DNA from: Podarcis filfolensis
Lineage: Eukaryota
NCBI GenBank assembly: GCA_964270895.1
Contig: OZ185439.1
DNA length: 64,000 bases
Direction: 5' to 3' (one strand)
Shown here: positions 9,487-59,670 of the stretch, one piece after another
Layout: the number at the start of each line of letters is the position of its first letter
Position numbering within the stretch: position 1 is the stretch's first letter
Position numbers and translations under genes: made by a program
The notes under the pieces: generated by a model
What the model was told of the DNA's origin: nothing
What the model saw: the letters and a program-made list of their open reading frames with translations, nothing else
Database searches by the model: none

Positions 9487-12400
9487 TCAAACTCTTGAAC
9501 AGCTTACCTCAGTCCTCTGTTGTCAGAATGCTTAAGGCTACAGCTTGGGTCAAAGAATCCTTCCTGCACAACAGCTGTAATTCCAGTGAAATACATTAAG
9601 CACTAAAATCAACATTCTGCTTTAGTTAAAGGAGATGACCAGCTTCTGTATTCTTGAGGGCTACTCTTTCTCCACACAGTGGCCTGGGGCTGGAACTGTA
9701 TTTTGTCACAGAAACTGATTATTCACAAGTAATTGGACACCACAATAAAGCTGGAATCCTCTAACGATAAGGGTCTCACAGCTATGGGGCATTACATTAG
9801 ATGTAAATACGTACATTTGCACATTGCAGAAGAAAGATGCAACATTACACTCTGGAATATATACTATATCTTAAAGCATTTCTTTCATTTCCTTACTAGT
9901 GAAAGCTGGCAGGCATTTAACCATATTATGCTGAATATTTGGTAGATCCATCAGGACCAAACAAATGGTCCAGTAACTACAGCAGAACACCTGTTGGCCA
10001 GAGCAGCTTACAATGCTATACCTTTACTATTACATTACTTAGACGTCTTAATGACATTTCAGTAACATTTGCACATTTTTGCAAAATAACTTACTGCAGC
10101 AATTTCTTGCACCAAATAAAAGCAATCCAAGATGTGCAGTTTTAAAATAATCTTTACTGTGAAGAGTGAAAAGATATATAGTAGTGAGTTGTCGTTTCAA
10201 GAGTATATGGTAAAATGGAGGAATACAGTATTTTAATCATCAGGATGTACCCTTTTGCTAGTGAAATTACAAGATCCTGGAGCAAAATACTGGCAGGAAA
10301 CTACGTAGGTCTTACAAAAGTGTGATGCCATGCATTATTGTATGAATGGGATCTTATACAAAATGAATCATTTTTAGTAGCAAGTGATATAAAATATGTT
10401 AATACAAAAACTATATCATTATAACAATATATTATAAGCAGTTAAATCTACATTCAGTGCAATTACTGGAAGGATAATATACGTAATATGAATTAAATTG
10501 CTATTTACCTATAATTTTGGCACTTTCAGATTGCCTTGATGGAGCAAAAGTCGCTTGTCATAGACTGGTCAACAAAGCTGTAACAAACTAATACTTGTTT
10601 ATAGTTAAGATGTAAAATGTGCTTTCAACAGTTGCAAAAAAGCAACTCCACCCTTACTTTCCACCCCCCCATTACTTATTTTAATAAGAAATATACACAT
10701 TTGATAACACCAATGCACAACAGCATCTCTGTGTAAATGCTTGGCCTTTACATGCCATTTTTCATGCTTGCTCACAGCCCTGGTTCCCCTGATGAGCTGC
10801 TTCTGTGCCATTTTTAAACAAGGCAGCTTCTTCCTCCATTCACCAAGTGAGTGGCAATGAGAAACCACATTGTGAACAATATGTCTTCATGGAATCAGTC
10901 TGATTAGACTCTGTGGTGACAACAGCGAGAGCAAATGAGACTGTAGTGCCCTCCCTCTGAAGATTCATTCAAGCTACAGTCACACAAGAACTTATATTGG
11001 ACTTACACATTCCAGCAGACAACACTCACTGCTGGATGCACATTGCATTGCACATCCAGCCAATACTTTCTTTTTCGTAGTACTTCATTGTAAAAGTTCA
11101 ATGTTGCTCGCCACCTCAAACGTACACCATTTTAACCCAAAGATGGGGTCCTTTTTCAAGGGGCACAAAATATTTACAAACTCAGGCTTCTGGTTTGGTT
11201 CAGCTCTTCTAATCACTCTCACTAGGCTGCCCTGAAACAGCCATTTACTTACCCCAATAAAAGTAAATTATTTCCCAGCCAATCAATTTTGTTTCTTTTT
11301 CAATGGACAGATTCTGTATTTAGAAGATGAACATTGTGACAAAACTGCAAGCAATTGATACTTCATATTAGATAACTCTGGAGATTTGTACCACAGTGAT
11401 TACTTTCCTGAAGGTCTCCTAAGATTATGGCATTTCAAATATCTCTCCCTAATCCATCTTTCTAACAGGACATTTCCATTCATCACAAATTTCATGTTTT
11501 AATGTATTTGCCTAACATTTCATTTTGAAAGGATAGCACTGATTTCTTACACTGTTAAAGCTGGCCTGAAAGCCTATCTGATATGGCACCCAGTCTTGGC
11601 ATATTTGTATTAGAAAGAATAGTATAATAAAATCTGTTTTTCTATGGAGCACTACATTAAAATCGTTAAAGCGGATCCATATCACTTGCTGGATCAGGAA
11701 TCTGTATCATAAATCTACATTGCTTTACTTACTTTCAAACATGCATCTCCACTAGTCACATATATGCCATTTTAAGGCATAACCAGCATTGGTCTAAGGC
11801 ATAAGAATTGTGTTCCCTAGGTACAGGAGTGCCAGCTTGGCCCTTCAACCATGGATGCTTGGGGCCATGGGTGCCATGCAGCATGCATGGCCCTGGCCCC
11901 AAAATTTGTGGGTGTCCAGCCCCTTCATGGGGAATTTTGTGGGTGCTCCGGCACCCAGAGCCCCAGGGAATTGGCACCTATGTCTAGGTATGTTGCAGAG
12001 GAAGATTCTGCATGAATTGTGTTTTGACTTCTTGACAGTAGACCCTGTGCTTTGTTCCTACAGTGCCTTAGTAAGAATGAGAACCACAATGCTCTCACAC
12101 AACTTCTCCACTCACAAGGGATATCACTTTCATTTCAGTGTTGTGGGCAAACCACATAGACTCAAAGTTCTGTGTTTAACTCCATTTAAATATGACAGCA
12201 CATATACATGTGTACCATTTTAAATGGAGCACATAGAGGGCTCTGGATGAGACTGACAACCAATTCAGTGTGAGTCCAAATTTAGGAGTACTTATCCTAG
12301 AGACCTAAGAAAATTATGTCCTACATTGTGAAACATGTTCCTCTATATTTGTGCTTGGAGGATAGTCTCAAATCAAGAGATGGGCAATCCTCTTGTGCTA

Positions 12401-19366: not shown

Positions 19367-20923
19367 CTAGAACAGGAATTAAAGAAAAAAGTTGGGAGAC
19401 ATCATACAGGTATAAGCTACACAAGGTTGCTTTCTAGGCTACAGAGCTTCTCAGCTTTGTAGCTGAGAAGGCTTACTTGTGAATGCACCCAGTAGGGTAT
19501 ATTTAGAGACAAAAAGATTGCATGAATGGTCTAAAGCTGGCACTGATGGCAAGCATCAAGCTGAATTTTATTTTATTTCATGGCCAAAATTATTGGTTCC
19601 CCTACTCATGCTCTTCAACTACAATTTAGATATCCATAACAAAAAGAAGCATAAATGGTTAGACCATTCCAAATACATATTTTTGAGTACATACAATGCC
19701 AGCATGTGCATTTCCAAATGCAATGTATGCAGCTGTGCCTCTGTACATATGGAACTCCAGTGACACACCCGGTTTGCTTATCTGCGGAGTGAAGTGCATA
19801 GTCACAGAGGACAGCTGGTAGATGCAACAGTGCAAATACCTATGGGAAAGGAGCAAAGAGACCCTGGGCTTGTTCCAGGCAGTCTCACTGGCTTCCTGAG
19901 AGTTCCAGGCAGGTCACTTAGCCTCCAGGTCCCTACCAGTAAAATAAAGCTAATAATAAATCTCAATGTCACAAGGCTGTTGTACAGCCTTGTATTTTTA
20001 CAAGCCTCAAATAGAAAGTCCCAGTGAGCATAAGTGGAAAGGAATGTTATTAACACTCCCTCTTCACAAGTCTTCTACTCTGTTCCTCCCTAGAGCTGAA
20101 GATATTGCTGTCCCAGACAAGAGCCACAGTCCCTAGAAAGAAAGCAGACAGCGTTCCTTTATAAATGGGGGCATGCAGCTGTGTTCATCTCAGGATAAAG
20201 GCCTCAATTTTATTCCACACTGTGGAACGGAGTCTAATTATACAGGGCAGGACACTGAGACCCCTATAGCAAGTGTCCTAAAAAGAGCCCCCTCTCATTC
20301 AACTGAATAAGGGGCCTTAAGCCCTTTCCACTGACAACCCATTATCAGCAAGGCTCATTCAGAAGCACCCCCCCTACCATCCTATAGACCCTCCTCCACT
20401 GGAAGCAAAGGGAGGTCTTAGAATCACAGAGCCGTTTCTATGGCAGCCGTCCTTCTCACCCCCACTCCCACTATTATGGAATTATCCCCTTCTGAAATGT
20501 CCTGTTGTGTCTGCAACACCAAATTTCCTCTCCCTTTCTGCAACGCTTTCCAAACTCTCTAAAAGGGTCAGAGGGATCCAAAGAGTCAGCGTAAAAGGCA
20601 GAGGTTCAGAGTGAGAGAGAGAGAGAGTGCTAGAGAAACATTGGAATATTCATAAATACCACAGCAACTCCCCCCTTCCGAACAGCCCAGCTGGAATGAA
20701 AACTGTCTTTCACAGCAAATGTGTTATCTACCCTCCTCTCATGTGAGCAAGATGATAATGGACTATCATCTTCAACAGGGCTCTATATAGTGCAACTCAC
20801 CCTTCCACTGAACCTGCCACTGTCTGCAACTTCAGGATCATCACTGTTTTTAGCCTTTCTGTCTTACCTACATTTGCTGGCACTCTAAGAAGCTAACAAG
20901 ATCTTTACCTCTCTTTTCTACAG

Positions 20924-25704: not shown

Positions 25705-26721
25705 ATGAACAACCTAGCTGATTCTTCAGGCCTGTTCTTCAACACTTCACTGGAAAGTTCAGAACAATGTGGCAAAGAGACCAATACGGAGAACATCCTT
25801 TTTGCTACTTTCTACCTTCTGGATTTCATCCTAGCCTTTGTTGGCAATGCTCTGGCTCTTTGGCTTTTCATCCGGGACCAAAAGTCAGACACCCCAGCCA
25901 ACGTTTTCCTGATGCACCTAGCCATGGCCGATCTATCCTTTGTGCTAGTTTTGCCAACCCGGCTAGTATACCACTTTTCAGGCAATCACTGGCCATTTGG
26001 AGAGATCCCTTGCCGACTCACAGGCTTCCTTTTCTACCTCAACATGTATGCCAGCATCTACTTCCTCATGTGCATCAGTGTAGATCGCTTCCTAGCTATC
26101 GTGCACCCTGTAAAGTCCCTCAAGCTCCGCAGATCACTCTATGCCCACTTGGCCTGTGCTTTCCTGTGGGTTATAGTTGCTGTGGCCATGGCGCCTCTTT
26201 TGGTCAGTGTGCAGACAGCTGAGATGAACAATACCACCATCTGCCTGCAGCTCTACAGAGAAAAGGCATCACGCCATGCTCTCGTGTCATTGGCTGTGGC
26301 ATTTACGCTTCCATTTTTTACTACCGTGACCTGCTACTTGCTGATCATACGCAGCCTGAAAAGAGGGAACCGAATTGAGAACCATCTAAAGGAAAAAGCC
26401 ATCAAAATGATAATAATGGTTCTCATGATCTTCTTGGTCTGTTTCGTGCCCTACCATATCAACCGTTACATTTACATTCTCAATTACGATGGTGTGAAGA
26501 CTTCCTGTGAAATGCAGCGGATTCTGGCTCTTGGCAACCGAATTACTTCCTGCCTCACCAGCCTGAATGGTGCCCTAGATCCCATCATGTATTTCTTTGT
26601 AGCTGAGAAGTTCCGAGAGGCCTTATGTGGTTTATTTTGCAGCAGAAAAGCTGCAAGGCTACCTTCAAGTTATGATGGGAAAACGAATGACAGCTCTTTG
26701 AGCACTAAAACTGAACTGTAA
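25705..26721 (+). CDS. GPR17: GPR17, class A GPCR (P2Y/CysLT-related), 338 aa, single coding exon
   Basis: Seven hydrophobic segments with GN, LAxAD, DRF, DPxxY and CLQLYREK (ECL2) motifs and a C-terminal KTEL. Closely matches recalled human GPR17. Acceptor tttcag at 25675-25676, 28 nt upstream of the ATG. Confidence 0.97.
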   Translation: MNNLADSSGLFFNTSLESSEQCGKETNTENILFATFYLLDFILAFVGNALALWLFIRDQKSDTPANVFLMHLAMADLSFVLVLPTRLVYHFSGNHWPFGEIPCRLTGFLFYLNMYASIYFLMCISVDRFLAIVHPVKSLKLRRSLYAHLACAFLWVIVAVAMAPLLVSVQTAEMNNTTICLQLYREKASRHALVSLAVAFTLPFFTTVTCYLLIIRSLKRGNRIENHLKEKAIKMIIMVLMIFLVCFVPYHINRYIYILNYDGVKTSCEMQRILALGNRITSCLTSLNGALDPIMYFFVAEKFREALCGLFCSRKAARLPSSYDGKTNDSSLSTKTEL

Positions 26722-30256: not shown

Positions 30257-31370
30257 CTGTAAAAAAAGATGCAGGAGAACATATCTTTACAAAATTTCCA
30301 CTATGTAATTCCAGTTTGCCCACCACAGAGTTACAATTCCCAGCACCCTTAAACCACAGTTCCCAGGATTCTTTGGGAAGAGGGTGGGCTTTAAATGTGT
30401 GGTGCGTATGAAGCTACTGTTACACAGAATGTAAGTGCAAAGTTCTACAAACTATTTACCACCATTATTTCAATCACTGCAGTTTTTTGTGTTCCTTTGA
30501 AGTAATTTATTCTTAGGAAAGCTAATCCCTAATGCAACCTATTTTGGATCAACATTTTAATAACAATATATTTGTTCTATAAGCATGTACTGCACTCTTA
30601 CAACACTCTCTCATTTTAATTATATTGGCTGCAGAACAGAGCATGATGGGCGGCAGAGCAACAGGGTACCCTTATGGACCAGGCAATGTTGCATTTGTTG
30701 AGATGGGTCAGCGCAGTGAGAGCATTCCACAGGTGAATGGGCCTTGAATTCATCAGCTTACTCACTTCCCCCACCCCCACACTTCCTCCAATACATCTCC
30801 AAATAAAAGAACAGAATGTTGCTTCCATGTTTAACTAACTGAAGTTTAGCATCTAATCCCAACATAGGACAAGCTGTGGTTAGTCTTAACTATGGTTAAT
30901 CAAAACAAGTCAACTTTGAACTGTGGTTTATGAAATTGGTTTGTTTCAATAAACCACAGTTAAAACAAGCCACAGTTTAGGGTTCAGATGTTGATGCTTC
31001 TCTGTGGTTAACTGAGAATGAAAATGAAAGCTTCTAATCACATCCTTGTGGCTATCCTAGAGGAGGATGGAGCAAACAAGCCCTGGCTCAAGAACATAAC
31101 ACTAAACAATAGCTCAGCATTATGTCTGAAGCAGGGCATTATTGACAATACTGCTAGGAAAGCAACCCCTCATTGATGACTGAATCATTTCAAAGCTAAA
31201 TTACTGTATACATGGAGGAAATGGAAGGGGGTCATTGATATAAGAATTGCAAATGAATTTTGGATAATCAAACCCCACAGAAAGTTCAGTCAAGCTTCTT
31301 AAAATCATGTAAGTGGAGGGGGGGGGAAGTCAAGTAGCTTTTCACACTATCAGAAAGATGCTGATCTTAC

Positions 31371-31530
31371 ATCGTAGAAGAGTCCATCTGGAAACTGGCG
31401 GAAGCACTGAGCACAGACAAAGCAGTTTTCATGATATAGTTCCCCATTGCTGTTCACGATTCGCTCAGTTGGATCAAAGCGAGCTCGGCAGCGCTCACAC
31501 ACAGCATTTGCAAGGGCATCTGACATGTTA
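31371..31530 (-). CDS. LIMS2: LIMS2 exon 2 ([14 protein letters not shown]...FPDGLFYD; LIM1)
   Basis: Acceptor ccccag, donor gtaag; 160 nt. Confidence 0.95.
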
Positions 31531-34500
31531 CTGGGGAACAAAACAGAAAAAGAAATATCACAATTACATATTGAAGCCATCAAAACCACCTAACTCAAAT
31601 TAATCAAATCAATGAGAAGTCCATGCTTACAAATTTATTTATGTTTTACCATATACAAAATCTATATATTGAAGGGTTCCATATATGCTCATCAACCCCT
31701 CCATGTTAGAAAGCCAAATCTTCCAGTAGGTCAGTGGGATATTTTCTGTCAACTTCAATGATGAGCCTATTTGAATCCAAACTGCATAAGAGGACTGAAT
31801 AAGGCATTTGCTAGCACAAAGTAGAAAACCAAGAAAACCAAGAAAACTCAATAATTTTTTTTGTGCCCTTTACAGAATATTCTTTGTAATAGTCAACTTT
31901 GCTGATGTCTAGATTTGTCTTAAATGTCACTGAAAGCAATGGAAATTTACAGTAAATGTGTTTAGATGCCAGTGTCTCAAGCAGACAATGGAATGAAAAA
32001 ACAAATAACTGAATGTCCACTTTCAGATGAGTGCTTTACATTACCTTTAGAATCCATTGGCTGGTTTTAAAGCATGCTCTGACTGCGTGTGGAATTCTGT
32101 GATCTGGACAGTCTTGTTTCCAGCCATATCAGCTTCAGATAATCTATGGCTTAGAAATGCTACTGGGTCACAGAGCCAGACACTATTAATCAACATCACT
32201 CATGCAAATAAAAATTCACAAGTAATCTTCTGAGTTTGGAGATAGCCTTGATGCTGTGTTCTTCAACAGATGTGAAAGAGTGAACAAACCCCTCCAGAGT
32301 TTTAATGTGAAAAGTTAAGCCTATAGGCACTTTCTGAAGCATGGATAACTGTGCAAAAGGCAAAAACAAATACTATGCTTTCAAGAGATCTAACTCCAAA
32401 GTCCTGTCTGTTAGTACGGAATCAGCCACCAGGGCTCCTGACACATCAGCAGTTGCCCTCTATCATTGCCTTGGCAGAGCAGAGTCACCCAAGGCCACCT
32501 ATGCTACTATGGAAGGGACTGGAAGCGAGCAAAGTCACCTTGGAGCAAAATGCAGTTGATTTACTCATGCTCTTTGATATTTAAACACAAATATATTCCA
32601 CAACAAAAAGTGCAAAAACTACCAGGGAAGCATGGGTAAATACAGATAATGTGGGACATACTGAACAGGACACAAACACAATTGAAAGAATGTTTATGCA
32701 AGAGCTGAAGGAGTCCTAATGGGCTTTACGAAACAGAAATGAAAACTCCCACCAAGAGACCAATAGTTAATCTGTGTCCTTGCAGGCCCATGTTTTTGTC
32801 CTTGGAAACATTTCTGGATTCTAGCTATGCAGGTCTTAAATTCATCCATCCCACTCATCCACCCACACACAACAGGCTAAAAATGTCAAATGTGAGAGGA
32901 TTGATCATATTTAACATCATAGTGGCAGCAGGCTTTCATAACTCCCAGCAGAATCTTACAAACAATCAGCTATCCAGACAATCTTATGAGAGCACAGGAA
33001 AAATTATAATGAAACTGAGTAATTAGGTGCTACATCCCAAAACTATCTTGGGATATACGGAGATGCAATAAAACTGATAAAGGGTAAACAGAATAAGTGA
33101 CTGTTATAAATAAAAATGTCGTTGGTAATGAGAAGTACGAAGGCCATGCAGAAGTCACAGTGCCTTAAAGAAAGCCTGATGTAAATTAATCAAGAGTAAT
33201 TCAGAAAATATTACACATAATTATGATATCAAACAGGATGAGCTTTTATCCTGGCCACTGACAAATCTAAAAGTGCAAGCTTCACAGATGTTGTTATAAA
33301 ATTCCCTTAAATATACATCTCCATCTCCAAATGGAAGTAACTCTTCAACCTTGCCCTCATCTGATCCTACAAAAGGTCTTTCCATTATTGTTCCTACCTG
33401 TTAAAGTACTTATCTCCATCAACCAGTCTATTAGTTAATTACTTTTATAACTGTGCTTGCCAGCCCCTTGCTAAGACTGCCCAGCCTTTGCAGCAGCTCT
33501 AGCAATCATCCATTTCCCACTTTTATATGAACAGCATAAACTTTTCAGACTTATTCATGCCACAAAGCTGGTAGCAAAGTTTGGTGGAGGACAGCTTGCT
33601 TCAGATAGCAACTCCATACTCATGTTGAGGCTTCACTGGAGAAACTGCAGGACAGTAATAGTTATTAATGACAAGACTAGAGGCAGTGAAATGGAGATAT
33701 CTGAAAAGTGCCATCTGGAAAGGACTGTGCCATATGGTTTAAAGAAAGCTCATATGTTTGTGCCTGAGAACCAAGGAGTGGGACAACACAGGACAATACA
33801 GCACCTGCACCACCACTGAAAGTGAGCAACATAAGCTCTGTGGCAGTAATTGTCCCTGGGATTGTGCTGGACTGGTAAACACATCCCATTGATCCACTGG
33901 AGATCAACAGAGAGATGACTCATAACCAAAGCACAGTGTAGATAGCATAGGAAGGCTGTTTACTAAGTGTGATGTCTAATGTCAAAGCATAATCAGATAT
34001 GCATAGCTTAAAAGATTTATAATTAAAAGTCATCAGTTTTAATTAATACAATGAAGGTATTCTGTTTTGGGTATAAAAGTCTTCATGTGCAAATTAGCCA
34101 GTCAAGATCAACAAAAAGCAAGAAAAGGCAACAACGAAAGAGACCTCTAAGTCTGTGGAATTTTCTTCACACTGTGGCTCACACATACATGGAAATCAGC
34201 ATGAGGAAGAGGTCATTAGAAATAACACAAGTCCACACCCAAACACATCACTATTATTAATTCTCCTGGAGCTTTGCGGTGCTTGAAATTCACAGCTGCT
34301 CAGGAGGTCTTTGTGACAACTCAGCTGGGAGCTTGATGGCACAAGAGAGGCAGTCCACAACCAGAATTTATTTTGATCTCTGATATATTTAGGGACTCTA
34401 ACAAAAGAATTACAGTATCTCTGTCTCTTGTAAAAGATGAGTTGGCAATGTAGCATAAAGGCGTGGTGAATGTTATATTTAATTCCTTAAACATACCAAT

Positions 34501-36156
34501 GTTATATTTAATTCCTTAAGATGATGATGCTTGGGGTGGGGGGGCACCCCTTTTCCTGTAGATACGGACTGTATTTCATTGCCATTGTGTTAAACAATCA
34601 GTCTTGTTTGCACAACTGAGAATTCAGAAGGGGCTGTTCTTAATTCTACCTTTCAATACAGACAAGAACATTGGGGGAGGGCTGTTTCTGCCTCACAGAT
34701 ACTCACTATCCATGTTGATTGAAAGACCTTTGCACTTACAACACTTCCACATACCTGCTGTGATGTAAGTGTTCACGTCTCAGGAGTAGAGAGAAACAAA
34801 TCAAGAGCTCAGGAGCCAAGTCTCTGATTCACCTTTAATGTACAAATCTTATTTAAGTAAGTTACTTGGCTGAGGATTCTGGGTTCTGAGATGCCAGACA
34901 GAATTGGTGGACCCAACTGATGCCACCTGTTCTCTACAACATGCTCAAACACCTCTCAGAGAGTGGAACAATTTGAAAAGCACTGCCCTACACTTTCCAT
35001 TTTATCTACAATTCTTCCCCTTCTGAATTATTTCAGTATTCTTCCAGAGTATCTCAGTAAATGAACCTGTCTCCTATTGTAGAATCTTCCCCTTTAATTC
35101 CCCTGCATCTAAAGCAGTACCCTCTCATGAACCAAAACCACACATTTTCATATGGGATGTAAGTGAGTCACGAAAACAGAAAAGTTTTAGTGTATGAATT
35201 ACTATGGGAAATGAGATTAAGACACAGAGCCTACAGCCTAGTGCAATTCAGACCAGACATTATTTGCTTAGAACAAAAGAAAAGCCTTCTGGTTCTACTA
35301 CCAGACTAAATGCAATCCAGTGAACCCTTGTACCCTTGTAGCAGAAATAGCTTTATGTTATGCGAAACAATGGTCCCCCCCCCAAAAAAAAGCTCAACAA
35401 CTTTGCCCCTTCCAATAAAAGCTCAATGAATTTTTGTCTGGATTTCACTTGAAATATGGCAACCCTGCAATAGACATGAGTTGACGACTATTTGGCAAAA
35501 AAATTAAAAGCCTAATTGAGCAGGAGTCTTCTAGGTGATGATAGGTATCAACGTGTTTATTTAATTTATCCTGCATATGATCATGTTCCAGAGGGGATAA
35601 GGGTATTGTTTCTTGTAAGAATTTTGAATACCACCGAAATTCCATGGGGACATATCACAAAGACAGGAAACACTGTGCTTGCTGAACTTTGCCCTGCTTT
35701 AGAGATCTTAAGGGAAGGGCAAATCCCTATTCTTTTTTCAGTATGACAATTCAATATATGCTGAAAAGAAAGAAAAAAATAACATAGAAACTATTTACAA
35801 TGGAAAAGACTTATTTCGGGTGGTATAAAAGTATTGGTTTGTTCCAGGTGTCAACAAAAGCTTGAACTTTAGACTATTAAGACTACACAGCGCCTTAGCT
35901 TTTGTTTATGTGGTGCCTACAACTCCCACATTGTTAGCCTGCCCAGCATCACCAAGGAGGCAAAAGTTCCCATGGTTGTTTTCCTGCTATTGTTCAGAAC
36001 TGTTAATACCAGAGCCAAAGATACCTCTTCAAACAAAGAGTGGAAACTGAAACACAGTCATGTCAGCCTGTCTAGTTTTGCCTTCCTTCCTGCTTCAAAG
36101 GAAACATTCCAATAATCCAAGACCATTAATCTAAAACAGCTATCCAAATAACCTAC

Positions 36157-36278
36157 CTAAATATCCCAGCTGCCCTGTCTTTCCCATCATTCCATAGTGA
36201 CCCTGTGCCACTCAGACGATCTTGCCGGCGTTGATAGAGTTTGGAAGATGCTAGCCCCCGAAGTTTCACGCCAGCCAT
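36157..36278 (-). CDS. LIMS2: Putative alternative first coding exon of LIMS2 (MAGVKLRGLASSKLYQRRQDRLSGTGSLWNDGKDRAAGIF-S)
   Basis: 122 nt from ATG to AG|gtaggt, phase 2, splicing in frame to exon 2; resembles recalled LIMS1/LIMS2 alternative N-termini containing SGLYRRR. Confidence 0.75.
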
Positions 36279-36989
36279 GGAATTCATTACCTCTGGGTAG
36301 AAAAGCTGTATGAGGATAACTGAAGAGCAGTCCACAAATAACACTGTAGGTTCAAGGAAGCAGTTTCTTCGGATAACTGCTTTTCTCAGAAATACTACAA
36401 GAACAAGTCCGTGCTTCTTATGCAGCAGCAGCTGCTCTGTAACTATTCAACATCTTCCTTCTTTTGTTCAAGTATGGAATTAGTGTAATTTGTTCAGAGT
36501 CATTTGAACAAGAACTAAAATTAAAAAATCTTGATTTTTTTTTACCTTGATTCCTTTACTAAAATCACAGAATCAAAAAAACTGAATTTGAGAGAGAACC
36601 CCCCCACCAAATTTGTTTAGTAATTAATACTGAAGACTACTTGCTGAAATAGACTCCTTCGTATCAGTCTTCTTTGACCAGTTCCATCACAATTCTATAT
36701 TATCTAGTGATCGGATTGCCACTTGGGAAAACAAATGCTGGAAAACAGCAGGCTAGCTTTGAAGCTTACTTCAAAAGCCACATATAGTCAGAATATCAAT
36801 AAGCTGAGAAAAGAAACATACTTTACATTCCATTCCCCACTATGTTCTCTCTGAGATGCAGTAGTGTTACAGACTCAAGCTGTTCCTTTACACAACTAAT
36901 TCCACGCCCACTTTAGGGAGATCACATTACATAAGCTGGAGTCATGACTAGCGTTTATATTGTTTGGATGATCCAGACCTCCCTAACCT

Positions 36990-37050
36990 CAGAATCATCA
37001 AATCGTAGAGTTGGAAGGGGCATGAGGGTCATCTAGTCTAACCCCCCTCA
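36990..37050 (-). mobile_element. CR1 3'-end fragment
   Basis: agaatcat..cgtagagttggaagggg..gggtcatctagtc.aacccc, the reverse complement of a CR1 3' UTR end. Confidence 0.55.
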
Positions 37051-38299
37051 ACTTATTTCTCCTTTCAAAAAACAACTTTTTTTCATATACTGAAAATTAT
37101 GTGCGATTATGCTTACTATTGCTGATTCTGGCTATATAAAAATCCAAGCCAAAAAAAGAAAAAGTAGCAAAATCCAACGATGCAGAAAACCAGTCCTTTA
37201 AATTAAGAAGCACAAACAAGTAGCAGAAAAGTTTCCCAGTATCCCAACCAAGCACAGATCCATAATTAGATGTATTATAAGTAAGAAATGACAATTCCAA
37301 AATCTATTTCATAAAAATGACAAAAAAGTACTGGCAAAATCACTCCCTCCTATATTCTACCTGCTTTTTAACATTTTTAAACACGGAAACAATAGCTTTC
37401 TTAATTATCTTTCAGAACAATGGGTCCAAATATTTCAAGCAGGGAGTACTGAAATTAAGTACCTTTGGTTTTGTACCTGCTAATTCCACTCAAAGATATG
37501 GAGGTGAACATTATATTGGCCTAGTGCACCTGGCTTATGCATATAATAATGCAGCCTTAATCCCTCTCTCAATCCATTAGTCACAGAATCATAAAGCTGG
37601 TGAGTGCCTGGAAATCTAAAATGGCAACTTTGCCAACAGATGACTATCCAGCCTTTACTTGAAGACCTCCAGTGAGGTCAAACCCACTTTAGTTCTGTTG
37701 TCAAACTGCTCTTACCATCAAAACATTTGTCCTAATGTTCAGCTGAAATCTACTCACCTGTAACTTAAGCCCATTAGGTCTACCCCTGTTCTCTAAGGAA
37801 GTAGAACAAGTCTCCTATTTCTATGTGGAAGCTTTTCAGGTATTGAAAGAGCCCTATCAACGTTTCCTCTCAGTCTTTCCTTCTTCAAACTACACATACA
37901 CAGTTCATCTATTCCTCATTTTCCTTACTGCTGATCATTTTGTTGCCCTCCTCAACCTTTTTCAGTTTGTCCATGCTCTTCTTAAAGTGCAGCCCCCCAA
38001 AATGGACACAGCGCTCAGGAGAAAGTGTGACTATGACATGCAGTAGAACCATTACTTTCTGTGGCTTGGAAATTACGGTTCTGTTAATACTGTACTGCCA
38101 AAAATCACGTTAGCCTCTTGTGCAGCCACAGCACACAAATAGCTCGTTTCAACATGTGATTGACTACAATTCCAAGATTATTTCCACATGTGCCACTGCC
38201 AAGTCAGGTATCCCATATCCTGTACCTGGATATTTTATTTATTTAACTAGCCTAAATCTAGAATCTTGCATTTGTTGCTATTGAATTTAATTTTCTGGT

Positions 38300-41589: not shown

Positions 41590-42260
41590 CCCAAGGGCTG
41601 CTCCGAGCGTGCAAGTGATAATATCACCGGCCAGGAGGGGGCTGCCGGCGGCGGGAAGGCTCACGACTGGAAAGGGGGCTGAACTGCCCGCTCTGAGAGC
41701 CAGAGGCCGCGGAGTCGCTCTCCGCCCATCCTCACCGCCGGCGCTGGCGAGGGGACCCCGAGGGCTTCTCCGACTGCTCAGTTCCTACCTGCCCGTCATG
41801 GCGGCTCCCGGCCCCGCGCTGAGGCGGCGGCAGCGGCTGTCCTGACAAGTGAGGAGAGGACGAGACCCGCCCGCGCTCTAGAGCCACTCGGTCCCCGGCT
41901 CAGGCAGCAGCGCCCGGCCCGCTTGGCTCTCGCCTGTCCTCCGCCCTGGGTCAGCCGCGGTGGCGGGCCGCCCCCCAACGCCTCCAGAAGACGGGCGGCC
42001 TCCTCTTCCCGCCCCTCGGCTCGGCCCAGCACATACTTTTCCTAGAAAGGGAATGAAATAATAAATAATGAAATAGCCGTGGCCGGCCGGTGGGCGGGCC
42101 AGGCGGTGGGAGCGCTTGGGCGGCAGGGCACGAGCCAAGCTTGCGGGAAAGAGAGGGACGTGTAGGGAGCTAAAGGCGCGGCTGTTGGTGCTCCGTAGGC
42201 TGAGTAGGGAATGGAAACCCATCGTGTAAGCACCGCAGTGGGAGCAGCCCCAGAGGAACA
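41590..42260 (-). promoter_or_regulatory. LIMS2: CpG island / LIMS2 main promoter and exon 1
   Basis: Very GC- and CpG-rich against an AT-rich background; contains the Kozak ATG and GC boxes. Bounds approximate. Confidence 0.8.
41789..41799 (-). CDS. LIMS2: LIMS2 coding exon 1 (MTG-S)
   Basis: Minus strand reads GCCGCC ATG ACG GGC AG|gtagga: strong Kozak context inside a CpG island, phase 2 matching exon 2. Confidence 0.88.
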
Positions 42261-43239: not shown

Positions 43240-44420
43240 AATTCTAGAACCCGCCCCCGCCAGCTCTCAATTTCGCCTTGTGGAAGGGGGGGGGGAAGGT
43301 CCAAAGAGACTGGCGTTTCTTCTCCAGATGATGGTCACTCTCTAAGTTTCATATCTCTATAGTTCAGCGTCTCTAGAGGAAAAAGTAGATCCAAGTCCTT
43401 GATGACGCAAACCCTATTCCCTTGGCGACTAGAAAAACCACGGAAGTGCATTACTCCGGCCGACAGTTGACCAATCGGCAACTGCCTTCCCACAAGGCCC
43501 ATCGCCTTCTCCCCAAGATGGCGGATCTGAACCGGCAATTGCAGGAGTACTTAGCTCAGTCCAAGGCGGGCGGCAGCTCGGCGGCCCTGTCGGCGCCTCA
43601 GAACCCGCCGCGAGATGAGGCGGAGAAGCCCGGCTCGGGGTTGGGGACTTGGCTGGGCCGGATCAACCCTTTCCCCGCGACGGAGACGTGGCCGTGGGCA
43701 GCCGAGCCGGAGCCGGATCCGTGGCTGCCGACGGGTCTGTCCCGTTGGCAGCGGCTGGTGGGGAGCGCGCTGTGCCTGCTGCTGGCCGCGCTCTGCTTCG
43801 GCCTCGCCGCTCTCTACGGGTCGCTCCTGTTGCTCCGCAAGTTCGCGCTGCTCTGGTCGCTGGGCTCCACCTTCGCCTTGGGCGCCGCGGGCTTCTTACG
43901 GGGCCCGAGCCGCCTTCTGGGCGAGCCCGACCGCCGCGGCCTGGCCCTCCTTTACTTAGCCTCGGTGGGCGGCACTCTGTACGCGGCGCTTGGGCTCCGC
44001 AGCACCCTGCTCACCACGCTGGGGGCCGTTGTCCAGCTGGGAGCCGGCGGAGTCTACTTGCTGTCTTCGGTACCTGGCGGGACTACCGGGCTGCGCTATG
44101 TCGGCGGATTCTTGGGCGGCGCCGTGCGACGCAGCGTGTCTAAAACTCTGCCCGTGTGAGGACGGTCGTCGAGGCGAAGCCCTTCATGGACGTGGGAAAA
44201 CAAGATCGATGTCTGTGGTAAAGAGCCCCTTGCCCGTCTCCAAACCAACGCGCAGCACGGGACGTCGTCTCCAGGCCAGACCCGACTGCCCATGGGGCAT
44301 TTTGTAGGATAACGTTTCTTTACTGTTTATCTTTTCGAATCGAGGGCAGAGGAGCACTTGAGTAACCGACCGGGACACTGCATCCTTCGCACAAGGCAGT
44401 TGAAAAGGATAGTTGAAGTT
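43240..44420 (+). promoter_or_regulatory. SFT2D3: CpG island / SFT2D3 promoter and gene body
   Basis: GC box at 43250-43258, ETS-type CGGAAGTG at 43441-43448, CCAAT at 43471-43475 and YY1-type AAGATGGCGG at 43515-43524 overlapping the ATG; a typical TATA-less housekeeping layout. Bounds approximate. Confidence 0.75.
43518..44159 (+). CDS. SFT2D3: SFT2D3, vesicle transport protein (SFT2/Got1 family), 213 aa, intronless
   Basis: MADLNRQLQEYLAQSKAG...RKFALLWSLGS...LGLRSTLLT...KTLPV* matches recalled human SFT2D3 at both termini. True ATG is in AAGATGG; the track ORF starts at an upstream TTG. Confidence 0.93.
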   Translation: MADLNRQLQEYLAQSKAGGSSAALSAPQNPPRDEAEKPGSGLGTWLGRINPFPATETWPWAAEPEPDPWLPTGLSRWQRLVGSALCLLLAALCFGLAALYGSLLLLRKFALLWSLGSTFALGAAGFLRGPSRLLGEPDRRGLALLYLASVGGTLYAALGLRSTLLTTLGAVVQLGAGGVYLLSSVPGGTTGLRYVGGFLGGAVRRSVSKTLPV

Positions 44421-56016: not shown

Positions 56017-57768
56017 TATATGGTTCTCATCCTCTAATTATGAGGCGGAAGTGGGGCCAGCAACCCAGATCCTGAACTCTCCCACCCCCTGCAAGCCATT
56101 TTGACTGGCCATCTGTCAATCACCTGTTACCAGGACATGAGATGACCCATTTTTCCTTTATAACCTTGCTTGAACTCAAGTCCAGCTACAAAGGAGGTTT
56201 CTATGTAAGTGTAAGTTGGGTTCCTACTATGCCATCAAAAAAAAAATGCAGCAGGGTTTAAAGTCACCACTGATCAGCTGACTGATGGCAACTTTCAGTA
56301 GGGATTGGTTCTACTGTATTTAGGAGTTCCCAACTGATCTAAAATATCAGGTGTGGGGCAGGTTGGCATGGCTTGGAGAACACAGAACTCTTGATGGGCC
56401 TAATTTGGCTTGAGGGCTGGAGGCTTTCCATGCCTGCTCTAAGGGTAAATCCAAACAACATTAAAATGGAATTCTCTCCCAGTTTTGGAATAACTTCAGC
56501 TAGAAACATCTAATAGAGCAGAACAAAACAAAACAAAAAAACGACGAACTGTGGAATCAGGCTACACTGGACAAAAAAAGATAAGTAGGACAAATGAAGT
56601 CAAAATCAAAGAAACATTTAGGTTTTATTGCAGCCTACTCTAGCAATTACCATGTGGATAAGATCCCACCAAAAAACATTCCTGTATAAGTCTGCATTCT
56701 TTACCACCTACTAAGAGCAAAAGGGTGTTCCTTGACTTCAGTGATTGTACAGAAGAGGAATTTTGGGCAGGTGCAGCTTTCCTCAGCCCTTAATAACAAA
56801 TTGCCCTGCTAGAACTCCCTCTTCTACATACCTTTTAAAAGTATGTAAGCTTTTTTATTTTTAATCATTGGCATCCGTCACCCTATAAACAAACTCATAG
56901 ACTATAGATTTAGGAATTTACAAAAATATATTTGCCAATAGGGGAGTGAGTGTTCATAAGAGAACATTCACACAACTCAGGTGATGTAGTTCAACTCAGA
57001 TATAACAGTGCAGATAGAGTAATATATGAGATTCCCCTCCTCTTTTCACTTCTATCAGCCCATCCCCCCATAACACAAAAATATTTCATTCCAGAGACCT
57101 AAGGAATCAGAGACCTTCTCATACTGCATCAAATACTGAAAAAATCAACCATGGCTTATAAAGAGGCAAAGGCAGTTGCTGTTGAAAAGGTGTTTTGTCA
57201 GCCCAGGTGGGCATGTGTCACCCTATGACACTCTGGGTTGTGGTCATCAATAAGACCTGCTTCGGGGGGGTGGGATCTGATGAATATTAAAAAAACATTA
57301 TTGAATCTCCTGATACACTGGCTATTTTGTACTGCAACTTGCTTGAGATATCTGTGAACCCCATTTTCATAACAGTCTGCTGGAACTATGAAAATAATAA
57401 GGTGACGTGCAATTTTGGTATCTCACTCCTGCTGACATAAATTGGTTGGGAGACTGCAGGGAGGAAGGGGAATTCAGTCATATTCGCTGGTGCAACGCTG
57501 GATTTCACCCATATTCTGAGATTACAAAAAAACAAACAAACAACAAACAAAAAACAAAAAAACCCCAGCATGTGTGTCCCAAAATCCATCTAATTTCATT
57601 TACACTAGGGTTATAACAACAGTCAGTTTTGTTCTTAAAAGAGTTTTACACCACTGAAATCACTGCTCTGCCTGATCATTTTATTATGCTATTAACAGCA
57701 ATTTATTATGGTATTAATTTCTTCCTGACCAGACCTCTTCTCATGAAGAGTATCCTTCCCAGACATAC

Positions 57769-58779
57769 CTGATTGAATGGGGCCCGAGGACCGTCACCAA
57801 GCAAGGGAGTTTTCTGCTGCTGAAAGGGTGGAGGGCCCTGGGAAGGATGTGGCCCCCTTGAAGGGTTCTGCTGTCCTTGAGGCCCTGGTGGCCCTTGCAT
57901 GTTTCCTTGAGGCCCTACCATAGCACCTTGCGGAGGTCCCTGCTGTCCTTGTGCACCTGGTGGCCCACGCAATTCTTGCGGAGGTCCCATCATTGAACCC
58001 TGAGGTGGAGGACCCCTCATCTCCTGGGGACCATGCCCCAGTAAACCATGCGGCCCTCTCATTTCTTGAGGTGGATGGCCCATCATCATTCCCTGTGGTC
58101 CAGGACCCTGGTTCTCCCTTGGTCCTGGAGGTCCCTGCATGCCTCTTGGGTTAAGTCCCATCAAGGGCCCTTGAGATACAGGACCCTGTATCCCTTGAGC
58201 TCCTTGCACTCCATGAGGTCCTTGCATTCCTCTTGGCCCAGGTGGCCCTTGACCACCAGGTGGCCCTTGAGGACCTAAGTGGGTCTGTGGTGTTGGTGGA
58301 CCTTGTTGACCTAAATGAGCCTGTGGGCCTGGTGGGCCTAAGTGACCCTGAGGTCCAGAATTCGTCTGTGGACCAGGTGGCCCTCCAGGTGGAGGGCCCA
58401 TTTGTCCATGAGGGCCAGGATGTCTCTGCATTCCTTGATGCCCATGAAGTTCTTGAGGTCTTGGCAGTCCTTGTGGAGGTCCTTGAGGCCCAACAAATCC
58501 TTGTGGTCCACCACCTCCTTGGTGTAAAGGAGGACCTTGGGGTCCCATTTGTCCTTGAGGTCCTGGAGGTCTGAACTGGCCCTGTGGCCCAGGTGGTCCC
58601 ATCTGAGGCATATTCATTGGCATCTGCTGAGGTGGATGGGCTTGCTGAAAGCCTTGAGGCACCTGAGACATTGGACTTTGTCCTGGGAAATGTTGGGGTC
58701 CATGAACAGGTCCTCCTGGAGGTGGCTGCTGCTGACCTTGTTCTGCTTGCTTCTGTGCAAGCCTTTCAATCTTCAGTTG
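57769..58779 (-). CDS. WDR33: WDR33 large exon encoding the collagen-like GPQ/GPP low-complexity region
   Basis: Acceptor tttgcag, donor gtatg; 1011 nt (337 codons), QLKIERLAQKQ...RAPFNQ. Confidence 0.95.
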
Positions 58780-59670
58780 CTGCAAAAAAGAAGAAAATAA
58801 TTTACACAGCCACACAATTATGACGAACTATTGGAAACCAAAGGGCACTTTCTGCGTAGCTTGTTCCAATTAGTATTAAGCCATGGCTTGCTCAACAAAT
58901 GCTAAGCCTCACAGAAAAGTAAACATCCCTTGGCTTGTTTCTCCAATGCTTGATTTATTCTCTAGCTGCTCTTGCCTGTTGCCTCTGTAGCTTGGTGAGT
59001 GTCTGGAGTGGGGTGGCCACCCACAGTTAAGCAAGACTGTTGGGTTTGGAGATAATGCCGATCCAAGGATAAAATATGGCTAGACTTTCAAGCCAAATAC
59101 AAACCATGGCTGCCAACAGTAGTTTGTTACTGGAAAACAAACCATAATTATTCTCTGGGCTGAGTTCAGATGTTCAAACAAGCCACACTTTGGCTAAACA
59201 AACTATGGCTTATCATTATGTACTAACCAGGCAATTTTTAATTTTAATTATTGTTTCAACAAAAGCAAAATGAAGAATGTAGCTAGGAAGCAATAACTTC
59301 AAACAGAATGTTTACTTCAGCAGCATACACCACTTGATTAGACACTGGTCAGGAGCAAAAAACAAAACAAAAAGCCACTTTCTTCAGAGGGTTTTGTGGC
59401 AATCATTTATTAATTATTCTTATCCTTGCACACAGAGCAGATTATATGTGGTTCCCAGATAGCCTCTCATGCAAGCAGTACTCAAGGGAAGACCCACTTA
59501 CAGCATCATGTAACTTGGGACCATTCATTAAGCCAGAAAAGTTTATGTTACCCATAGCTGCAGTGATGTTGCAAATAGGGCCTATCAATATCCTCATTGG
59601 TTTCCTCTAATTTTTGGTGGGAGTAAGTGCATTTATGCAAACATTATCAGTGACCTGACTTTTCACATAC

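Follow-up and report, generated by a model that had tools for sequence, protein, structure and literature searches.

Does intron 1 of LIMS2 (PINCH2) in the lizard Podarcis filfolensis hold a second coding start, and if so, what would it place at the N terminus of the protein? The question arose from an original prediction that a minus-strand frame of 122 nt, running from an ATG to a splice donor within the intron, ends in phase 2 as exon 1 does and so joins exon 2 in frame. We addressed it in a window of 64,000 nt (the whole stretch of DNA analyzed, from contig OZ185439.1), to which all positions refer. The features needed are listed here; X1 and X3 denote two sets of Logan contigs, taken to be RNA by guess only.

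36157 to 36278, minus strand: coding part of the alternative 5' exon, 40 codons opening with ATG and then two bases, AG (phase 2); from sequence, conservation and selection.
36151 to 36156, minus strand: splice donor GTAGGT of the alternative exon; from sequence and the junction in an X3 contig, the GT being kept in all sources.
36279 to 36877, minus strand: 5' leader of the alternative exon, minimum extent; colinear with the genome in the spliced X3 contig.
36285 to 36287, minus strand: second in-frame ATG, 9 nt upstream of the exon ATG; from sequence.
31371 to 31530, minus strand: LIMS2 exon 2, start of LIM1 and acceptor for both 5' exons; from a Pfam LIM match (E 1.3e-10) and RNA contigs.
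41789 to 41799, minus strand: coding part of canonical exon 1, ATGACGGGCAG, in a CpG island; from sequence and the exon 2 junction in X1 and X3.

The predicted frame was present, and its translation agreed with the predicted one letter for letter. The alternative coding exon, 122 nt within intron 1, sits between canonical exon 1 and exon 2; read on the minus strand, it begins at 36278 in the context ccATGG and, after 40 codons and the bases AG, runs into gtaggt. Canonical exon 1 (ATGACGGGCAG, followed by gtagga) ends in the identical phase. The exon 2 acceptor at 31530 reads ccccag, followed by T AAC ATG TCA, and across the joint between the alternative exon and exon 2 the bases AG and T form a Ser codon, keeping the frame. 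The boundaries of exons 1 and 2 also confirmed the predicted length of the product: with 40 residues from the alternative exon against a canonical head of three (M-T-G), the protein is 37 aa longer than canonical LIMS2. The second in-frame ATG, likewise predicted, is present at 36287-36285 but among relatives is kept in one agamid source only. Besides this in-frame ATG, the leader (36279-36877) carries seven upstream ATGs with short uORFs, and the -3 position of the exon ATG is a pyrimidine in the window.

The gene was identified as LIMS2 by a PINCH-type LIM exon together with synteny. The translation of exon 2 is a LIM domain by Pfam, 100% identical to exon 2 of the rattlesnake and 91% identical to LIMS2 of the Komodo dragon, Varanus komodoensis. 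The CpG island at 41-44 kb that houses canonical exon 1 is common to LIMS2 and to an ORF of the Got1/Sft2 family arranged head to head with it (43422-44159, plus strand; Pfam, E 6e-20); this ORF is probably SFT2D3, with a bidirectional promoter shared with LIMS2. A Got1 gene lies upstream in the rattlesnake LIMS2 locus too. Nested on the opposite strand, within the LIMS2 intron downstream of exon 2, is an intact 338-aa ORF for a rhodopsin-family receptor (25705-26721, plus strand; Pfam 7tm_1, E 9e-59), which by position is probably the GPR17 orthologue. Farther along, a 369-codon open frame at 57706-58815 (minus strand; GC 0.53) consists almost wholly of collagen-like Pro/Gly/Gln repeats; a Pfam search with this frame returned no match, and synteny makes the C-terminal exon of WDR33 its probable identity. 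The receptor, Got1/Sft2 and P/G/Q-rich ORFs fit the arrangement in human, with GPR17 nested in LIMS2 and SFT2D3 and WDR33 upstream.

Use of the exon in RNA was assessed with reads and contigs over 31250-37200. Both X1 and X3 do contain cDNA, as shown by exon 2 contigs (depth 99 and 130, respectively) that continue into the sequence of canonical exon 1; in both sets the loose end at 31533 matches the reverse-complemented sequence around 41799. The junction from 36157 to 31530, which the original prediction had named as the one to look for, was seen in X3. There, one contig of 748 nt (depth 6.3) joins the two positions exactly, with GT..AG ends (CT..AC on the plus strand). It includes 28 nt of exon 2, plus 2 ambiguous, the length of overlap (k-1) that a variant-specific unitig should have. 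The canonical exon 1 unitig in X3 has a depth of 57, against 6.3 for the alternative form, suggesting, very roughly, a one-in-ten share for the latter in this set. The sample behind X3 is 1-3% diverged from the window and thus represents either another population or a sister species; the coding part differs at one position only, 36255, and the change is synonymous. Support for the junction amounts to this one contig in one run. In X1, no alternative junction was seen, exon 2 runs straight into canonical exon 1, and a contig reads through the alternative donor unspliced at intron-like depth. The raw-read RNA runs X23 and X24 gave 5 and 9 reads over 6 kb, too few for junctions, start, strand or level.

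Whether the exon is the first of its transcript or an internal one bears on the promoter. Upstream of the junction, the X3 contig is colinear with the genome to 36877, a contig end that is a lower bound on the reach of the exon. The block from 36157 to 36877 (721 nt) has even depth, with zero cover just downstream of the donor and just upstream of 36877; since cover is absent on both flanks, the block has the look of an exon, 721 nt being its minimum length. No junction upstream of the block was found in the contig, and contigs cannot show a cap site. An exon that is real and coding could nevertheless be internal, spliced from an upstream exon through an acceptor-like site about 40 nt before the ATG, with no promoter in intron 1. 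Such a site is suggested by a pyrimidine tract followed by CAG (ttatcctcat.cag) just 5' of the ATG, kept in the window, in L001 and in the rattlesnake, and the upstream extension of the X3 contig could then stem from pre-mRNA reads. The even depth of the block, its bare flanks and the lack of any junction into the acceptor-like site make this arrangement unlikely. It also sits poorly with a CAGE atlas of human muscle, in which a comparison of alternative transcribed regulatory elements reported LIMS1 forms with altered N termini, upregulated in diaphragm (bioRxiv 10.64898/2026.04.08.717200). A keyword search of the open literature returned no study of the LIMS N-terminal head, that CAGE report on LIMS1 being the sole related item. 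It is likely that the alternative exon opens its transcript and has a promoter of its own. A short repeat-like piece (tagactagatgaccctc...cccttccaactct) lies at about 36990-37060 (minus strand), just upstream of where the spliced X3 contig has its 5' end; a 37-nt RNA contig of higher depth maps to this piece, as expected of a dispersed element.

With the 40-aa peptide as query, a full HMMER scan against 1.8 billion representatives returned five true hits. Two are Logan ORFs from lizard-like sources, with 92% and 78% identity, the latter belonging to a run whose description gives an oral sample from an agamid, Japalura splendida (PMC12336156). Another is GenBank KAL7990734.1 of Crotalus horridus, a 100-aa protein formed by the alternative exon spliced to exon 2 and then the next intron, with 79% identity to the window peptide over 39 residues. 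The two further hits are more diverged ORF groups (79% and 66%). One contig of the diverged groups, L005, holds exons 2 and 3 as well, 6.9 kb downstream of the alternative exon; it appears to come from a non-squamate sauropsid, because its exon 2 residues match LIMS2 of birds and tortoise and not that of squamates. A word search with the 40-aa peptide gave no matches among proteins of 22-70 aa, and one with the non-squamate ORF P0008, limited to the peptide, gave unnamed ORFs of 106-150 aa only and no partial LIMS2 models.

Loss of the frame, the ATG or the donor in relatives was sought, and all three were found to be kept in the five other sauropsid sources. Counting the window, the exon begins with ATGG in all six, is exactly 122 nt long and has no indel; its last G is followed by GTAGGT or GTATGT in every source. 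In both loci where exon 2 could be read it begins with T, so that the frame is kept: in the rattlesnake the alternative exon is at 10001 and exon 2 starts at 19491, and in L005 the corresponding positions are 1553 and 8543. The exon is the only densely invariant block of a six-way DNA alignment. By blastn against the window, the snake sequence matched over 36324-36138 only and the non-squamate sequence over 36280-36151 only. Two lizards are also alignable over about 36638-36957, adjoining the 5' end of the spliced contig. In the non-squamate sequences L005 and L009, the intron is still alignable for about 60 nt past the donor, and the read-through ORF gives similar peptides; this may reflect a conserved intronic splicing or regulatory element.

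The dN/dS check proposed along with the prediction gave values of 0.11-0.59 for the whole exon (Nei-Gojobori), with the constraint concentrated in codons 1-25. There, by the same method, pN was 0.02-0.13 against a pS of 0.19-0.84, a three- to fourteen-fold deficit of non-synonymous change; in codons 26-40 pN and pS were about equal. Codons 1-25 are thus under strong purifying selection, and codons 26-40 form a free linker of fixed length. The pattern is that of an exon under translation in which a head of about 23-25 residues is constrained; the conserved basic motif of this head is roughly M-A-G-V-[KR]-L-R-G-L-x-S-S-K-L-Y-Q-R-R-Q-D-R-L-S.

These figures weigh against the reading that the exon is transcribed and spliced but serves as an alternative 5' UTR only, with translation from a Met in exon 2. 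The long leader with its seven upstream ATGs would suit such a role, as would the pyrimidine at -3 of the ATG in the window. A UTR would, however, keep neither frame nor motif, and what we observe is scarce non-synonymous change in codons 1-25, a length of 122 nt without indel and an invariant ATG in six sources, and a peptide motif common to LIMS1 across vertebrate classes (see below). We regard a purely untranslated role as quite improbable. Less credible still, to the point of being negligible, is a chance open frame in the intron that meets a GT in the right phase by luck. Short ATG-to-GT frames are common in introns, and the X1 depth over the exon is at intron level, but chance is refuted by the conservation, selection, splicing and homology results together.

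Is the head peculiar to LIMS2? With the natural rattlesnake protein KAL7990734.1 as the query in a search for paralogues, near full-length matches were obtained to LIMS2 of the manta ray Mobula birostris and to LIMS1 of Lynx rufus and Eptesicus fuscus, listed in RefSeq as isoform X4. Further matches were from a bear and a free-tailed bat and, as LIMS1, from two grouse (sage-grouse and ptarmigan), the frog Ascaphus truei and a platyfish. All the matched proteins open with a like head, and in all of them the joint with exon 2 falls one residue ahead of N-M. When six sauropsid LIMS2 heads were compared with seven LIMS1-type heads by hhalign, columns 1-23 aligned to columns 1-23 (probability 93.6, E 2e-7). 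The window peptide matched manta LIMS2 by BLASTP (17/29 identities, E 2e-10), and the manta protein found window positions 36278-36186 by tblastn (E 1e-5). Residues M1, L6, L9, S12, L14, Y15, R17, R18 and R21 are invariant in all eight aligned proteins, and the motif of the alternative PINCH head, M-x-x-[LV]-x-L-[KR]-x-L-x-x-S-x-L-Y-x-R-R-x-x-R, begins at Met 1 in the window peptide. Among hits of 55-175 aa, no mammalian LIMS2 fragment with the alternative head was found.

The likeness to the alternative-head isoform of LIMS1 (PINCH1) extends to gene structure, in that the 5' exon joins the matching exon 2 in the same phase and the first 23 residues correspond column for column. That isoform differs in belonging to the paralogous gene, in having a head of 35 residues, whose basic run is followed by R-P-D-S and not, as in LIMS2, by R-L-S-G, and in an unrelated linker. 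Manta LIMS2 comes from the orthologous gene and has the same head, with the run MAGVRLR, but carries five extra residues ahead of the shared Met. The rattlesnake protein, also from the orthologous gene and with the same head spliced to exon 2, differs in being a 100-aa fragment that extends into the following intron, with 'hypothetical protein' as its only name.

The original prediction had held that the exon encodes an ancient isoform shared by the paralogues and marked by an L-x-x-S-x-L-Y-x-R-R motif, which presumably lies near the start of the alternative N termini of human LIMS1 and LIMS2; the LIMS1 proteins in the databases and manta LIMS2 bore this out. Because the motif is common to LIMS1-type proteins and manta LIMS2, the isoform class is ancient, and it is already annotated elsewhere. 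The same head on LIMS1 and LIMS2 across jawed vertebrates places the origin of the exon before the LIMS1/LIMS2 duplication, and the lizard LIMS2 form is an orthologue of isoforms that other species already have in their public annotation. That the isoform exists is for this reason no surprise, and its interest is modest.

The central claim, that of an alternative LIMS2 coding exon, is upheld by the spliced X3 contig, the rattlesnake protein, the conservation in five sources and the purifying selection. Very probably, these 122 nt form the coding end of an alternative 5' exon of LIMS2 that is both genuine and old. The exon would have its own promoter upstream, its ATG would be used, and the head may act as a short binding or localization module that modulates PINCH2. 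Transcripts with the alternative exon leave out exon 1 of the CpG island and join 36157 directly to 31530 in exon 2. Initiation at 36278, in the conserved ccATGG, would then swap M-T-G for 40 residues, placing the conserved basic motif of 23-25 residues, followed by a free linker of about 15, directly ahead of LIM1. In PINCH proteins LIM1 is the domain that binds ILK, as part of the ILK-PINCH-parvin complex. The promoter would be a non-CpG one lying upstream in AT-rich DNA, and expression would on that ground probably be tissue-restricted. If the leader is at least 600 nt long, its seven upstream ATGs would damp translation.

Since the head would end about 15 residues from LIM1, we hypothesize that it serves as a short, basic motif for binding or targeting, which would tune the engagement of ILK by PINCH2 or the location of the complex. 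We give roughly even chances to a broader proposal, in which LIMS1 and LIMS2 share, in the 23-residue head, a linear motif that is over 400 million years old and uncharacterised, and by which a promoter-selected subset of PINCH could gain a distinct partner, localization or ILK affinity. If true, the lizard exon would be a further witness of an overlooked regulatory layer in the ILK-PINCH-parvin complex. Pfam searches with the peptide and its relatives gave no family up to an E of 10. An AlphaFold2 model of the rattlesnake protein that joins the alternative exon to exon 2, built from an alignment of 8 rows, had a mean pLDDT of 50 and a weak helix at residues 13-23, and was unusable.

For annotation, the analysis gives LIMS2 of P. 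filfolensis a second protein-coding start, or confirms one, and it explains the rattlesnake 'hypothetical protein' KAL7990734.1 as the LIMS2 alternative exon plus exon 2. For the study of cell adhesion, a head kept from ray to mammals on both paralogues, with selection on a basic motif of 23-25 residues near LIM1, would make a testable target. In the C. horridus sequence JBNQXW010000005.1 (L003; 10001-19671 and 26936 onward), the LIMS2 annotation is split in two, one part being the 100-aa 'hypothetical protein' and the other a LIM gene model of 224 aa farther downstream.

Two proteins, P0006 (E 6e-4) and P0007 (E 1e-3), were rejected as LIMS relatives, their matches being repeat-driven. P0006, a 542-aa protein from a JGI/IMG contig of 1.7 kb with no Pfam family, contains at least five tandem units with S-L-A-N-S-K-L-[LM]-R-R-R-Q-[DE]-K; the unit resembles the core of the LIMS head, S-S-K-L-Y-Q-R-R-Q-D-R, either by chance or as a shared linear motif. 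Finally, a third, longer N-terminal variant of mammalian LIMS1 (P0107 of Diceros and P0114 of Vombatus) contains, at residues ~37-47, the stretch A-V-S-K-L-Q-R-R-[HQ]-S-D. It recalls the S-K-L-x-x-R-R core, and the motif may have been recruited twice, or the likeness may be a coincidence.
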